The position numbers and the translations under genes were made by a program. DNA of 64,000 nucleotides, taken from sequence record LC494302.1. One strand, 5' to 3'. The notes under the pieces are model-generated. The model worked only from the letters and a program-made list of their open reading frames with translations. It did not search any database and was not told the DNA's origin. Numbering within the stretch: position 1 is the stretch's first letter; each line of letters starts with the position of its first letter. Positions 10,178 through 28,767 of the stretch are shown here, in pieces.

Positions 10178-10298
<121 letters not shown>

Positions 10299-10514
10299 TG
10301 AAAGTCATTATCAATCCAGCAGGAAACTTTTTTGGTGAGGTTTTCGGTGCAGACTGTGTTGTGCAAAATTTTCCACGAATTGAAATTGACGGAATTGATG
10401 TTCAACAATATGGAAACCTGTACTATGTAGTTGATAAGACTGGTTCTATTGTTCATGACAGTGCTTTCTTTACAAAAGAAGAGATGCAGCACTTAATTGT
10501 ACTGGATACATAAA

Positions 10515-10697
10515 ATGACACACGAAGAATGGATGTCCAAACAGCATAAAGAACATGACTGCTTTGGGAATGGCATTCGTCAGGTACATTATGATATATT
10601 AAGAGATGAAAATCTTTTCAGGTCATATGTTTTGGATACCAGAAAACCCTGGTTTATATGCGAACTGGCATTTAGAAAGTCAAATAATCAAAACTAA
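10515..10697 (+). CDS. MTHEEW-family small protein 3
   Basis: MTHEEWMSKQHKEHDCFGNG...WFICELAFRK. Confidence 0.7.
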   Translation: MTHEEWMSKQHKEHDCFGNGIRQVHYDILRDENLFRSYVLDTRKPWFICELAFRKSNNQN

Positions 10698-11275
10698 ACA
10701 AGGAATACAAAAAATGGAAACAACTTTATTTGAAGTTATTCAATCATTAAAACCTGAAGATGAGGTTCAAGTACTACTACATGGTTATCGTGTAAAAGGT
10801 ACTGTGGTTTTAGTCAATGATACAACATTGGTTATTACAGAAACAAACCCATATGATAGTAATCAACTTGCCAATATCCATATCGATATCACTGGAATTA
10901 TTGGTGTCGGTGTATCTAAAACACTTGCATAAATCATTAATTCATTATATAATGATTATCACTGGTTCTAGATGAGGATAATATTATGCATTTTGAAAAA
11001 TTCAACGTAAATCGTAACACACGCATTGAAGTTCTTTATGAAACTCAAGACACCATTAGTATTCGTACAAGTAGTGGGGATGTATATCATGACTGTACGA
11101 TTGGCTGGGAACAGGGAAGAACGCGTAGTGCAGTATTTGATAATTATCGCTTTTATCAAGGAGACACTACGATTTGGCCTGAATACGTAGAAGATATTGC
11201 GTTTGAAGATGAACATAAAGATGAATTTATCAAATTTAATCCTCAAACTGAATCATAAATAATGGGACATCACAT

Positions 11276-11391
<116 letters not shown>

Positions 11392-11395
11392 AAAT

Positions 11396-11497
<102 letters not shown>

Positions 11498-11502
11498 AAA
11501 CC

Positions 11503-11663
11503 ATGACGCATGAAGAATGGATGAATGACATTAATTTTAGATATGCAGGTTTCGGTAACTGGAGAAAGTATCATTGGGAAATCATGTCAGACCCAGCAGA
11601 ATACGATAAACTTATAAACCATGAAGCGTATCCGTGGTTCTTTATTGAAATAATGGTACGAAC

Positions 11664-11667
<4 letters not shown>
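11503..11667 (+). CDS. MTHEEW-family small protein 4 (54 aa)
   Basis: MTHEEWMNDINFRYAGFGNWRKYHWEIMSDPAEYDKLINHEAYPWFFIEIMVRT, read by hand. Confidence 0.65.
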
Positions 11668-11829
<162 letters not shown>

Positions 11830-11837
11830 AAAAAAAG

Positions 11838-12251
<414 letters not shown>

Positions 12252-12308
12252 CTAAATAATTCAGTACTGAGGATATTAATATGTTTAAAGATGAACGTCC
12301 AGATTTGT

Positions 12309-12346
<38 letters not shown>

Positions 12347-12351
12347 GAATT

Positions 12352-12692
12352 CCACAATCAGACGTATATGGTGTAAGTTACGTCGATGCAATCCAGAACA
12401 AGATCTCTGGTACTCTAGGAAGTGGTGAATGTTAACCTAGACGGGTTTGATAATTGGACGATAGGCAATTATTACTTGACTAGCAGGTTGAAACTAGAGG
12501 TGACAGTCCTTCACCAAACTGGAAAACCGGATGGACTTTTATTTAAAAGGGTAAGGCGTGGAAATATGTTTACAGAAGTTGCTTTTAGTAGCCTGTACGC
12601 CCCACGTCAAGGTAGCCGAAAGGCAAGTTAAAACGGATGGTTATAAAGCTGAATTAACAGCGGCGTTTAAAAGCGTCACCATCCATTTTTTT
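12352..12692 (+). ncRNA. putative ~330 nt structured non-coding RNA
   Basis: Own promoter, GC-richer than flanks, at least 8 hairpins, closes with GGATGG/CCATCC stem and T-run. Confidence 0.6.
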
Positions 12693-13029
12693 AATTAAAG
12701 TTGGTGATATGAGTGTTAAAGACATTTCAAAGTATGAAGAGTTTCTTAAATCATTTTTGAATTCAAAATTAACATCTAAAGCTTCTAAAAATTGGAGTGA
12801 GGATAACCCAGAAATCCGTGTTTTTAATGAGAACGATGAATCGTTTATTATTAATGATAACGAAATTGTTTTTGAATCATTAGAAGAAAATAAAGAAATA
12901 AAAAAACTAAAATATCCTACGTTACGAGATATAGTAAATAGTTTAAGTACTGAATACATTACTTTCAAGCTATGTGCTGATGAAGCAGATGAATTCCAGA
13001 AACGAACAGTATATGAAAATGTGTTTCCG

Positions 13030-13064
<35 letters not shown>

Positions 13065-13088
13065 GAAGGTTTTTTCCGAAAATAGTAC

Positions 13089-13473
<385 letters not shown>

Positions 13474-13491
13474 TTCACATGATATAGGGTG

Positions 13492-13556
<65 letters not shown>

Positions 13557-13571
13557 TATTGATGATTACCG

Positions 13572-13607
<36 letters not shown>

Positions 13608-13608
13608 T

Positions 13609-13676
<68 letters not shown>

Positions 13677-13744
13677 CATTTCAGGTGATGAATCTGAAGA
13701 AGATGGTTTTATTACTGAAACTATGTACTTAACTATTGAAAATC

Positions 13745-13824
<80 letters not shown>

Positions 13825-13949
13825 CTTCGCCTTATGATGACTATGCGATTGGTAATTGCGAAACTGCTCATTCATATCAAGCGGGTGACACTAATGTTGA
13901 AGAATCTGGCGAAGATTTTTCGGATTCATTTGATGAAGATGGAAAACTC

Positions 13950-14304
<355 letters not shown>

Positions 14305-14307
14305 ATA

Positions 14308-14394
<87 letters not shown>

Positions 14395-14449
14395 GACTGC
14401 CAAACAGCTTGAAGTACTTTGTAGTGCTGCACCTATGCCGACACTTGGC

Positions 14450-14550
<101 letters not shown>

Positions 14551-14562
14551 TATCTTACTTCT

Positions 14563-14652
<90 letters not shown>

Positions 14653-25923: not shown

Positions 25924-26889
25924 GTGAAAAAGCTTGATTTAAATACAATTGCCGAAGAAGTTCTGGATGAATGTTTTGCTAATGAAGAAGTCAACACACT
26001 AGAAGCCTTAGATTTCGTTGAAGATAAAGATGATAATGAAGGTAAAGTACAAAGCAGTTTCAAATATAATATTACACTTAAGCGACCACCAAATGTTTCC
26101 AATGAAGATCTAATTCGTGATATTCAAGCTGGTATCAATGTAAAGAAAAACACTGAACTGTTAGTTCGTTACAATTATGGACTGATTATTGATGTAGCAA
26201 GTAAATGTACTTGTTATATCCCATTTGAAGATAAGATTTCATATGGTGTTGAGGGGTTCATGAGAGCACTAAAAACCTTTGATCTTAATAAGAATGTTAA
26301 GTTCATTACCTATGCTTCTTCTAGTATTTACATGACAGTCTATAACGAAAGTTCTGACGCTAACTATATGGTACACTTCCCACGTTATATGAGTGTTCAT
26401 AAGATCAAAGTAAAAAGATTCTGCCAGGAATATATGCGTAAACATGGTGTTCGCCCAACACCTGAAATAATCTCAGAGGGTACTGGGATTGAGATTCAGC
26501 ATGTTAATAATTGTTTATTATTTCAAAGCGAATACACTTCACTGGATGCACCATTAGACGGTGTTACAGATGGTACATTAGGTGACATTATTCATTCACC
26601 TGCTTCTGATTTTAACCTCAATGTTGATAGTATCCGTGCACCTTTACGTTATGCTATCAATGAACTGACTAACGAATTGAGTACTAAAGAACGTGAGATT
26701 ATCCAGCGTGTTCATGGTCTAGGTGAATATGAACCTGAAACGCTTCGTGAGATTGCTGATAATGGTTTTGTTGATGATAATGGAAAATATGTTAAATCCC
26801 GTTCATCAATACACCGAAAGTACAGTGAAGCTATGCAAAAGCTTAAGAAGTTAGTACTTGCAAAAGGGTACGAATACGAAGATTTCTAA
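25924..26889 (+). CDS. RNA polymerase sigma70-family factor
   Basis: Region 2 GFMRALKTFDLNKNVKFITYA, region 3 TSLDAPL, region 4 LSTKEREIIQRVHGL...ETLREIA. Confidence 0.88.
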   Translation: MKKLDLNTIAEEVLDECFANEEVNTLEALDFVEDKDDNEGKVQSSFKYNITLKRPPNVSNEDLIRDIQAGINVKKNTELLVRYNYGLIIDVASKCTCYIPFEDKISYGVEGFMRALKTFDLNKNVKFITYASSSIYMTVYNESSDANYMVHFPRYMSVHKIKVKRFCQEYMRKHGVRPTPEIISEGTGIEIQHVNNCLLFQSEYTSLDAPLDGVTDGTLGDIIHSPASDFNLNVDSIRAPLRYAINELTNELSTKEREIIQRVHGLGEYEPETLREIADNGFVDDNGKYVKSRSSIHRKYSEAMQKLKKLVLAKGYEYEDF

Positions 26890-26894
26890 AGAAC

Positions 26895-26923
26895 AAGGGT
26901 TGGCTTATGCCAACCTTTTTTTT
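26895..26923 (+). terminator. Rho-independent terminator
   Basis: GGTTGGC-TTAT-GCCAACC plus T8. Confidence 0.85.
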
Positions 26924-26957
26924 ATGGGATGAAGTAAAAGTTTGTGATATAATTATC

Positions 26958-27430
26958 TTGTACAATTCTGTTGGCATGATATTCATGTACCTGATCCACT
27001 CGAAAACGTAGAGGGCAGTTGAGCAGTCCGACAGTGCGAACAGCAAAAGAAACCCGTTAGATGTGGGCATAGTTTGAACCCCTCACGGCAATGCGGCTGT
27101 ATAAAGAACCACGTTAGGATAGCTGGTGGTTCCTTGATAGACATATAAGGATAACACCTTACGAATTATCTAAGGGAGAGTTATCGAATTTTGTACAGGA
27201 AAGTTGCGTCCAAAATTTGAGTACTCACATTAAGTATTTGATTGCATAGATACTTAATGAAGATACACTATGTTTAAAAGTGTAGACCGTCATATGAAAC
27301 TGAAGTAGAGAGAAACAGGATGACCCGCTTTCGCACTCGTTATGAGTAATCTTCAATGCAATAGCTCTGATACCATCAGCGTCAAATTTCCCTCCTTGTG
27401 GGGGGAAGAAAAATCCCTTCCTCAAATCCC
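26958..27430 (+). ncRNA. putative ~470 nt highly structured non-coding RNA
   Basis: TGATATAAT just upstream, no + strand ORF, many stems, long-range AGTGCGAA(27033-40)/TTCGCACT(27330-37) pair. Confidence 0.6.
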
Positions 27431-27978
27431 GTCAATATTAAAAGTCCTTGACAGTTATTAATCATTCGCGTAGAATACGTAGTATTAGAAGCGAACAGAC
27501 ATCTCGAAGAGATGGATGATTAACCATTAAGGAATATCAAATGAATTCAGTAATCTTTTTAGTAGTCGCTTTCTCTGTTAATTCCGGTGTACAAATAACC
27601 CCAATGAATTCCATGAATCAATGCATAGCAGTACGTGATAGTACATACGAACAAGTAAACAAAGATATTTGGATTACAGTTAGTAAAGAACAAATGTGGT
27701 GTTACAATAGTAATACTAACACAAAGCTTATTGTAGGACAAACTCAATGAGTTATGGCGTTCGTTTTGAGATTCGTTCTATTGTCATCAATGCAGAGAAA
27801 CAAGTATCGTTGGATGGTGATATACGTGAAATTTATCTATCATGTATCCGTGCGAAATCTGAAGCAGATGCCTTAGTACAAATGTATAGTTTTAACTTTT
27901 CAAATGGATTCTATTTGGTACGAGTTATTGAAGTGAAAAAAGTACTTATTGGTTGTAGCATAGAAGGATTAATGTAAA

Positions 27979-28767
27979 ATGAGCACTATAGATGAACTGA
28001 TTCGACGGAATTCAAAATATTACCAACCATCAGAAATTGTAGGTAACATTACCAAATCAGAGTTTGGTCCAAATACTCGAAAACTCATTCATGTAATGTC
28101 ACGTGATGGCTTTAAATGTGATTGTTGCGGTGAATCTAATGTAGTATTCACTTTACACAAGCACAGTACTAAAGATCGTTATAAATTCAGACCTTATGTA
28201 CTTAAAGGGAAACGCCTTGTACGCATGACGTTAGACCATAATGTACTGGACTGTCTTCAGGGCGGTAATGATAAAGAGAACATGACTGCACTGTGTGAAG
28301 ATTGTAACGCATTACGCCAGCATAAGTTTGCTGAATACAGTGAGTTTAAACACTGGTATCATAACGCGGATCGTTCAATCGAGCCTGACGTTAACTACTG
28401 CTTCATTGAGTACATTAAGAATGCCAAAGATACATACATTCTTAAATCAATGTCACCTATTACCGTGTTTCCTGAGAACCTATTCACTACATTAAAGAAT
28501 AGTTTTATTGTAGGTGATATTGATGCATTCAAGTATTTTGACAAAGGTGCAAAACATTTTGAAATTCAATGTCTTAGTACTGCACTATGTGAACTCATTA
28601 AAATTTACATAAAAGAGTATTTGGGTATTGACAATGTACGTGTACCAGAGTATACTTTTTCTATTGAATTCGATTGTGAATCAATCAAAGAGTTTGGAAT
28701 TCTTTTCAATAAACAAATAGAACTTGCAATTCAAAACGAAATCAAGTACTATACTACTAACATTTAA
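27979..28767 (+). CDS. HNH endonuclease-domain protein
   Basis: FKCDCCG...TLDHNVLDCLQGGNDKENMTALCEDCNALR. Confidence 0.8.
   Translation: MSTIDELIRRNSKYYQPSEIVGNITKSEFGPNTRKLIHVMSRDGFKCDCCGESNVVFTLHKHSTKDRYKFRPYVLKGKRLVRMTLDHNVLDCLQGGNDKENMTALCEDCNALRQHKFAEYSEFKHWYHNADRSIEPDVNYCFIEYIKNAKDTYILKSMSPITVFPENLFTTLKNSFIVGDIDAFKYFDKGAKHFEIQCLSTALCELIKIYIKEYLGIDNVRVPEYTFSIEFDCESIKEFGILFNKQIELAIQNEIKYYTTNI

Follow-up and report, generated by a model that had tools for sequence, protein, structure and literature searches.

The large (over 400 nucleotides, nt), intricately folded non-coding RNAs known in bacteria and their viruses fall, to our knowledge, into no more than about a dozen classes. Several of these large classes proved to be ribozymes or unexpected RNA-only machines. 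Two of them, GOLLD and ROOL, form RNA-only homo-oligomers (PMC12286853). In the jumbo phage PA5oct, a relative of the phages considered here, abundant transcripts lacking open reading frames (ORFs) have been described as ncRNA001–004, of which ncRNA002, 451 nt long, accounts for about 5% of the phage reads during early and middle infection (PMC7318152). We analysed a stretch of 64,000 nt from sequence record LC494302.1 (the window), and found that positions 26960–27436 of its + strand are an RNA gene of a previously undescribed family, whose members are 470–570 nt long and number at least 58 distinct sequences. An earlier note on this DNA had proposed a large structured RNA of unknown class at this place, and the proposal held: no Rfam 15 model matched, and covariation was seen across 56–58 homologues. 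We regard as established that this is a stand-alone, promoter-driven, + strand RNA gene with an elaborate fold under selection.

The window RNA resembles GOLLD and ROOL in that all are large, multi-pseudoknotted, phage-carried, stand-alone non-coding RNAs without an obligatory protein partner nearby. However, it is smaller than GOLLD and is matched by neither the GOLLD nor the ROOL model. GOLLD and ROOL also often adjoin tRNA genes, whereas the nearest tRNA to the window RNA is ~12 kb away, and no tRNA genes were seen beside the other copies. We know of no GOLLD or ROOL that occurs as 3–5 diverged copies per genome, or in integrase-bearing enterobacterial islands, as the window family does. 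OLE is a similarly ornate RNA of ~600 nt with many invariant nucleotides; it works with membrane proteins, and the island members of the present family sit near a membrane protein (c0, described below). OLE differs in that its model gave no match, its hosts are Firmicute extremophiles, the phage copies of the window RNA have no c0 homologue, and the soluble domain of c0 is probably periplasmic. The covariance-model check suggested in the earlier note was run with Rfam 15, whose 4227 models cover among others group I/II introns, RNase P, tmRNA, 6S, GOLLD, ROOL, OLE, raiA and HEARO, and gave no match in 26958–27430 at gathering thresholds. At E <= 10 the weak matches were to the flanking terminator or were noise, with none in the window RNA, and eight diverse relatives searched at E <= 1 likewise gave no match in the RNA. 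PA5oct ncRNA002 was rejected as a homologue, as neither nhmmer nor visual inspection detected similarity. The phage tRNA genes of the window are six in number and clustered at 10200–14642 (ARAGORN); one is a 92-nt tRNA-Ser with called anticodon ACT at 13128–13219, and a borderline Rfam tRNA match at 11396–11474 has no ARAGORN call.

A BLAST search with the non-coding stretch returned 273 places in 71 phage records; over the BLAST searches as a whole the number of records was 62–71, with 3–5 places in each. The window is DNA of an Asteriusvirus jumbo coliphage: with its flanks, the RNA region matches Escherichia phage vB_Eco_slurp01 at 100% identity and other Asteriusvirus jumbo phages (e.g. 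121Q, PBECO4, G17 and phAPEC6) at 98–100%. There were four places per genome in Asteriusvirus, of which only one, copy A, lies within the window; five in Serratia BF, the Erwinia pEa_SNUABM phages, Yersinia fHe-Yen9, Pectobacterium CBB and Cronobacter GAP32; and three in Salmonella 7t3, Salmonella Munch and Xanthomonas XaC1. Klebsiella RaK2 gave a short match and was found to carry a divergent full-length copy. Across genera the similarity (~70% DNA identity) is confined to the non-coding part, the flanking genes being less conserved. In one Asteriusvirus genome nhmmer found exactly four copies, on one strand, at about 18, 128, 208 and 262 kb, and the family hidden Markov model matched the window copy at 26936–27468 (E = 1.5e-117). 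A motif-pattern scan of IMG/VR produced 25 matches, all of them in Rak2-like jumbo phage contigs and co-oriented within each contig. The metagenome and genome scans together added ~43 confirmed members, and the pattern loci L034–L075, which had no nhmmer match, were left out of the family. All of the Rak2-like jumbo phage genera examined had the RNA, and a full-text literature search turned up no earlier description of it. The persistence of 3–5 diverged copies per phage at conserved genome positions suggests that each copy is kept by selection.

The signals that the earlier note had recognised around the non-coding region (the terminator, the TGATATAAT motif at 26945–53 and the TTGACA of the next promoter at 27448) are all present. 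The elements of the locus are as follows.

25924–26889: upstream sigma-70-family gene, recognised by Sigma70 r2/r3/r4 domains in the ORF
26895–26918 (+): intrinsic terminator of the sigma-70-family gene, a 10-bp stem and T-run; end of the preceding transcription unit
26945–26953 (+): extended -10 promoter TGATATAAT of the RNA gene, from whose sequence a start at ~26960 is predicted
26960–27436 (+): predicted ~477-nt non-coding RNA, the sigma-adjacent copy A of four in the genome, both ends predicted
27448–27476 (+): sigma-70 promoter TTGACA-17-TAGAAT of the next unit, taken as outside the RNA

An extended -10 element (TGnTAYAMT) lies upstream of 52 of the 58 family members. The exceptions are copies at the Dam-adjacent position B described below (L009/L031, which are copy B, and L021/L024), and these copies may be transcribed differently from the other members. 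As the earlier note had stated, there is no substantial + strand ORF: those across the RNA region are of 34 and 39 amino acids (aa), and the - strand ORFs are unconserved. The longest ORF per family member has a median of 36 aa on the + strand and 52 aa on the - strand, no ORF is conserved across the family, and Tandem Repeats Finder (TRF) detected no tandem repeats. Length variation within the family has four sources, namely a variable 5' hairpin, expansion of helix Hf, a portable hairpin with two possible sites, and a terminator-like hairpin. The last of these, with its T-run, occurs in about half of the members, ahead of the conserved 3' hairpin and box.

The minimum free energy of the window copy (-120.3 kcal/mol) was unexceptional relative to shuffled sequences (-111.9 +/- 5.8; z = -1.45). 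Taken by themselves, the stems of the earlier note are thus no more than chance would give, and the case for structure rests on comparison with relatives. The homologue alignment recommended in the earlier note showed strong compensatory covariation. Pair statistics, slid-partner controls and parsimony events on a tree were obtained with purpose-written scripts from sequence-based MAFFT L-INS-i alignments. RNAalifold predicted 67 pairs from 19 sequences, 31 of them with compensatory double changes, and a mutual-information scan of 53 unique sequences yielded many top column pairs that were 100% Watson-Crick with two or three pair types. About 18 helices, among them at least three pseudoknots, were supported by 56–58 homologues; helices were 92–100% canonical, with up to 53 independent compensatory events in a single helix. 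G.U pairs outnumbered A.C pairs by 340 to 77, an excess which indicates that the + strand transcript is the structured molecule under selection. The elements of the fold, in the numbering of the window, are listed here.

26968–27034 (+): 5' sub-domain, in which Ha (CUGUUGG 26968–74 with CCGACAG 27028–34) encloses Hb and Hc
26975–79/26983–87 (+): Hb, a variable hairpin (CATGA/TCATG), present throughout, its sequence differing by lineage
26996–27015 (+): Hc, CCACUC/GAGGG, with the conserved loop GAAAAYGUA
27040–44/27096–100 (+): Hd, ACAGC/GCUGU, part of the central multi-helix junction (27040–27144)
27054–57/27085–88 (+): He, CCGU/ACGG, central junction; all canonical
27060–84 (+): Hf, central junction, with loop CAUAGUUUGAA
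27091–93/27142–44 (+): Hg, AUG/CAU, central junction
27106–12/27126–32 (+): Hh, GAACCAC/GUGGUUC, central junction
27117–27171 (+): PK1, Hh loop GGAUAG (27117–22) with linker UUAUCU (27166–71), just 5' of the invariant UAAGGGAG (27171–78)
27146–50/27157–61 (+): UAAGG/CCUUA hairpin, within 27146–27185, the outer part of variable length
27171–75 and 27150–55/27180–85: alternative to that hairpin, CCUUA with the UAAGG at 27171–75, and GAUAAC (27150–55) with GUUAUC (27180–85)
27187–27217 (+): portable hairpin AAUUUUG/CAAAAUU, with a conserved 17-nt loop UACA..CGUC (UACAAUAUAGNUNCGUC)
27228–37/27250–59 (+): Hk, CAUUAAGUAU/AUACUUAAUG, in the 3' domain (27228–27362)
27241–47/27356–62 (+): PK3, Hk loop AUUGCAU with AUGCAAU ~110 nt downstream
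27264–84 (+): Hl, 3' domain
27289–93/27320–24 (+): Hn, GUCAU/AUGAC, crossing S2 and Ho
27301–05/27351–55 (+): Ho, UGAAG/CUUCA, 3' domain
27308–12/27328–32 (+): S2, GAGAG/CUUUC, 3' domain
27335–38/27344–47 (+): Hp, ACUC/GAGU, 3' domain
27374–85 (+): box 1 of the 3' tail (27374–27435), CAUCAGCGUCAA
27388–27407 (+): G+C-rich hairpin of the 3' tail, UUCCCUCC/GGGGGGAA
27423–35 (+): box 2 of the 3' tail, CAAAUCCCGUCAA

Across 56 sequences every pair was canonical in Hd (280/280; 22 parsimony events), Hn (279/279; 6 events), Ho (280/280; 15 events) and S2 (280/280; 9 events), as were 389 of the 392 pairs in PK3 (17 events) and 99% of those in Hg (5 events). The slid-partner controls for these helices, and for Hh and Hk, gave fractions of 0.00–0.70, with the exception of 0.98 at a single shift of the 3-bp Hg. 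The six local stems that the earlier note had described exist where it placed them, and compensatory change keeps such stems across the 56 relatives. These stems include GAACCAC/GTGGTTC (Hh; 93% canonical, 39 events) and the 10-bp stem CATTAAGTAT/ATACTTAATG (Hk; 92% canonical, 53 events); TACACT/AGTGTA and TTCCCTC/GGGGGAA were conserved. The stem drawn as GATAAC..CCTTA/TAAGG..GTTATC is also conserved, but the partner of its CCTTA is ambiguous, as either of two invariant TAAGG segments could serve and, because the core residues do not vary, both options are 98–99% canonical.

The two long-range pairs of the earlier note did not survive the comparison. The pairing of 26960–68 with 27186–96 was 57–58% canonical, close to its slid controls (0.14–0.71). 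That of 27033–40 with 27330–37 is perfect in the window copy and part of the minimum free energy fold of that copy; however, it was 74% canonical family-wide and broken at two positions in more than half of the members, and its strands are used by better-supported helices (27024–25/27035–36, Hd, S2 and Hp). The pseudoknot built on these two pairs is thus not conserved; at least three others are supported. Two further pairs, 27024–27036 and 27025–27035, cross Ha and were canonical in 112 of 112 cases (TA/AT/CG; 7 events).

In PK1 the sequence changes between lineages while complementarity is kept. In the mutual-information scan the pair 27118–27170 is TA in 28 sequences and GC in 25; independently of the alignment, cognate pairs identified by eye (counting the next U, of UAAGGGAG) were AUCGU/ACGAU, AUCAU/AUGAU, AUACU/AGUAU, AUACC/GGUAU, AUAUC/GAUAU and AUACA/UGUAU. 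The covariation of PK1 and PK3 fits pairing within one molecule and pairing between identical molecules equally well. The idea that paralogues carry orthogonal pseudoknot sequences, giving specificity of hetero- or self-assembly, was rejected because two Yersinia-phage copies have the same PK3 loop. Many nucleotides are invariant in the unpaired state, for example GAAACCCG, AUAAAGAA, GAUAGACAUAUAAGG, UAAGGGAG, GACCGUUG and ACCCGCUU. The portable hairpin is found in other copies (e.g. L008, L012) inside Hp instead, at both sites, or not at all, and in this it behaves like a tertiary-contact or protein-binding module. In a whole relative genome, box 2 of the tail occurred only at the four RNA copies and the 3' hairpin motif only at three of them, which shows that both belong to the RNA unit and led us to reject a general promoter or regulatory motif. 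The window copy itself forms Hd, Hg, Hh, Hk, Hn, Ho, S2, PK1 and PK3 and has the core motifs, and so carries every feature by which the family is defined. Also invariant, between 27146 and 27178, are AUAUAAGG and UAAGGGAG, both of them Shine-Dalgarno-like, and a CACCUUA similar to the 3' end of 16S rRNA; the resemblance of UAAGG, UAAGGGAG and CACCUUA to Shine-Dalgarno and anti-Shine-Dalgarno sequences could be ribosome-related mimicry or coincidence.

Several classes of RNA with similar properties were compared with the window RNA. Group I introns and RNase P share the size range and crossing helices, and the order Hn-Ho-Hn'-Hp-Ho' recalls P3-P7-P3'-P8-P7'. However, only 7 nt separate Hn from Ho, so that there is no equivalent of the group I P4-P6, and the segment ACAGRAC..CCCGCUU recalls the 3' strand of RNase P P4 only superficially, as the P4-like strands here are just 15 nt apart. 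Insertion of a group I intron was rejected because the sigma gene has its own stop and terminator, the downstream unit has its own promoter, and the other copies lie between unrelated genes. A tmRNA was rejected because ARAGORN found none (only the six tRNAs elsewhere in the window) and because the 5' end of the RNA pairs ~60 nt downstream rather than with the 3' end. An omega RNA or HEARO (IscB, TnpB) was rejected since the nearest HNH-like ORF lies three ORFs (0.5 kb) downstream, behind its own promoter and with no Pfam match; among the flanking ORFs tested, copies B and C had no such HNH-like ORF.

The copies occupy four positions in the phage genomes, which are conserved across genera.

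Position A: early region near the sigma gene; adjacent in Asteriusvirus, 2.4–4 kb away for Yersinia-phage copy L019 and metagenomic jumbo contig L029
Position B: upstream of a ~200-aa ORF and Dam; in 121Q, CBB, RaK2 and XaC1
Position C: RNA on the + strand, between endonuclease VII (-) and baseplate hub (-); in 121Q, 7t3, a Yersinia phage and a 349-kb metagenomic phage
Position D: between DUF7325 and DUF5856; in 121Q and metagenomic contig L090

The sigma gene is upstream of the copy in L019 and L029, and the early-region location is roughly conserved. However, a role together with the adjacent sigma factor, on which the earlier note had speculated, gained no specific support: the other three copies of the genome adjoin unrelated genes, and as no protein family is common to all four contexts, the sigma adjacency is positional only.

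Outside phages, the RNA occurs once per small integrase-bearing island in Enterobacter, Klebsiella and E. coli. Islands of the first type (Enterobacter, Klebsiella) are ~11 kb long and lie between rlmI and acyP (L189/L190:3575–14461). They begin with an integrase of the serine or tyrosine type, followed by up to three unknown ORFs and the RNA; next in order are a CI/S24 repressor encoded on the opposite strand, a Ner/SfsB-like helix-turn-helix protein, c0 (286 aa, three predicted transmembrane helices), an LprI-like protein, a serine recombinase of small size, and the Kiwa pair KwaB and KwaA. The island thus has a CI/Ner-type switch and two envelope proteins, c0 and the LprI-like one; no replication, packaging or transfer genes were recognisable in them. 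The second type, in E. coli LR-29-1, lies next to ffs; its integrase is disrupted by IS3, and with the RNA (404 bits) it carries a c0-like protein and a recombinase. Between the two types c0 is 24% identical and the small serine recombinase 73% identical. The c0 family was found only in Enterobacteriaceae records, and tblastn against the phage loci detected no phage homologue of the island proteins. An AlphaFold model of c0 (predicted local distance difference test score, 81) gave no fold match in the PDB with E below 2, and neither PADLOC nor NCBIfam was informative on the island ORFs. Judging by the predicted topology and by two conserved cysteines, the C-terminal domain of c0 is probably periplasmic, which makes direct RNA binding by c0 unlikely. 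In the E. coli island, ~650 nt between the 3' box of the RNA and the same-strand c0-like gene are unannotated (L198:12650–13258).

The family tree pairs the E. coli island RNA with the C-position copy of Yersinia phage fHe-Yen9-04 as sisters (support 0.99). Island RNAs of the Enterobacter type stand beside the C-position jumbo-phage copies L117/L015/L103; this join has a support of 0.59, and the group lies inside a clade with XaC1 and RaK2 that has a support of 0.94–0.99. As the island clades are nested in phage diversity, the simplest reading of the tree is that islands acquired the RNA gene from phage lineages at least twice.

We lean, by a little, towards the view that this is a stand-alone ~480-nt non-coding RNA gene, transcribed by sigma-70 polymerase and folded into two pseudoknotted domains, which acts in trans, with a host factor or alone, and is portable in the conflict between phages and islands. 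Host sigma-70 RNA polymerase would transcribe the RNA from the extended -10 promoter, presumably early in infection, and the transcript would fold into two domains tied by no fewer than three pseudoknots: PK1, PK3 and the crossing of Hn with S2 and Ho. Since no component other than the RNA was found to be common to jumbo phages and islands, we infer that the folded RNA acts in trans and that its partner would be either a host-encoded factor, conserved across gamma-proteobacteria, or the RNA itself, as in the ROOL and GOLLD RNA-only assemblies. Its portable activity might matter in phage-island conflict as a decoy, in hijacking or in manipulation of the host; the repeated capture of the RNA by islands that also carry defence genes suggests such a role. 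Several points weigh against this proposal. The start, end and abundance of the RNA are predictions, and trans action is argued for by elimination. The terminator-like hairpin that about half of the members have ahead of the 3' hairpin and box fits poorly with a single RNA spanning the whole unit, copies at position B do not have a canonical extended -10 element, and some copies have same-strand genes downstream, where a cis role is possible. Finally, the covariation statistics come from MAFFT alignments and our own scripts rather than from R-scape on a structural alignment.

The alternatives differ mostly in what the RNA is for. One of them gives a specific biological role and is compatible with the proposed fold and trans action: the RNA would be essential to the jumbo phage, and islands would have taken a copy to poison or titrate phage machinery or to be replicated or transferred by the phage, or else the phage copies would mimic island RNAs, as pseudo-ToxI does. 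We consider this account, as specified, unlikely, although it draws on at least two separate cases in which island RNAs are sister to phage copies of the endonuclease VII/baseplate-hub position, on the Kiwa defence genes KwaA and KwaB and the envelope proteins of the islands, and on the retention by island copies of their own extended -10 promoter. That both island types combine the RNA with a small serine recombinase and a membrane protein of the c0 family, despite the low identity of c0, also fits, but may reflect only a shared island backbone; the topology of c0 makes a direct interaction with the RNA unlikely, and the island proteins have no homologue in the phages. ToxI and pseudo-ToxI offer a parallel, as an RNA gene common to defence-type bacterial loci and lytic phages, which suggests arms-race capture. 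The window RNA differs from ToxI in having no tandem repeats and no adjacent RNase toxin and in being more than ten times the length of a ToxI unit, and its neighbouring genes are unrelated, on which grounds a type III toxin-antitoxin RNA was rejected.

The chief mechanistic rival to a trans-acting RNA is a replication-origin primer, in which the folded transcript would stay hybridised to DNA near its G-rich 3' end and prime DNA synthesis, as do ColE1 RNA II and the transcripts of T4 R-loop origins, with islands borrowing it. Such transcripts are likewise promoter-driven, of ~0.5 kb and G-rich in their 3' region, and T4 also has several origins per genome; here a ~350-kb genome of a T4-related phage has four to five units, dispersed and co-oriented, the 3' hairpin CCCCUGCGGGGGG is the sole strongly G+C-rich element and has a conserved box after it, and the islands carry no recognisable replication gene. 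However, the selected fold, with its three pseudoknots, conserved loops and G.U asymmetry, goes far beyond the known needs of R-loop priming, there is no antisense feature like RNA I, and half of the members have a terminator-like hairpin ahead of the 3' hairpin. Cumulative GC skew has no inflection at copies A, B and D, and its change near C coincides with a switch of gene strand. Iterons or an AT-rich unwinding element were not noticed by eye (no specific scan was made), TRF detected no tandem repeats, and none of 72,556 plasmids contains a homologue or similar sequence, which also argues against a ColE1-type plasmid replicon. An origin primer is in our judgement decidedly unlikely. A cis-acting leader, tethered to RNA polymerase or sensing a signal and controlling read-through by antitermination (like the HK022 put RNA) or by attenuation at the internal terminator, is highly improbable. 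Same-strand genes do lie downstream of copies A, B and D and of the E. coli island copy, the terminator-like hairpin directly follows the core in about half of the members, and the copies are co-oriented with most genes. Nevertheless, the copies at position C, like those in Enterobacter-type islands, converge with the next genes, beyond copy A there is a strong, separate sigma-70 promoter, and the size and complexity of the RNA are far above those of antitermination RNAs known to us. That the region is no functional RNA at all, and instead a decayed mobile element (the alternative raised in the earlier note), a pseudogene remnant or a set of chance stems, is very unlikely indeed, close to negligible. 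The unexceptional single-sequence fold and the small hypothetical ORFs annotated across the region in several GenBank records would agree with it, but the region is better conserved than its flanks at ~70% DNA identity across genera, has undergone hundreds of compensatory changes, and keeps its position across genera with no conserved ORF.

Other observations concern the surroundings of the gene. The unit 3' of the RNA consists of small ORFs and an HNH-like ORF (27979–28767; 262 aa; HNH endonuclease in other annotations), in which CxxC and H-N-H-like motifs can be seen by eye and for which no Pfam match was obtained at E <= 0.01. On the - strand there are ORFs of 75, 53 and 66 aa within 26843–27425; these lack conservation across the family and are probably spurious. 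In several public records, such as BAU.Micro_ELP-22, E9.1, JP4, SHEFM2K and the Salmonella SD phages, three to five small 'hypothetical proteins' are annotated over the RNA, and the present results correct the public annotation of the GenBank records concerned. Outside the window, 2.2 kb of slurp01 (76123–78315; L002:10124–12316) has no annotated gene and no BLAST similarity to the RNA family; this stretch could hold another non-coding element.

RNA-bearing phages plate on E. coli MG1655, as has been reported for slurp01 (PMC5114366) and as the record host field gives for Sharanji, which makes genetics, structure probing and cryo-electron microscopy directly feasible. The family is notable for its very strong covariation, its several syntenic paralogues per genome and its presence in enterobacterial islands. 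A possible, if rather doubtful, extension of our proposal is that this is an ornate RNA class traded in a conflict of jumbo phages with Kiwa-bearing islands, in which the phage would need several diverged, self-sufficient copies early (possibly as an RNA-only assembly or ribozyme) and the islands would have captured the endonuclease VII/baseplate-hub copy more than once to sabotage or ride the phage. If true, this would be an RNA-level analogue of satellite hijack or of defence by mimicry that operates without a protein partner.

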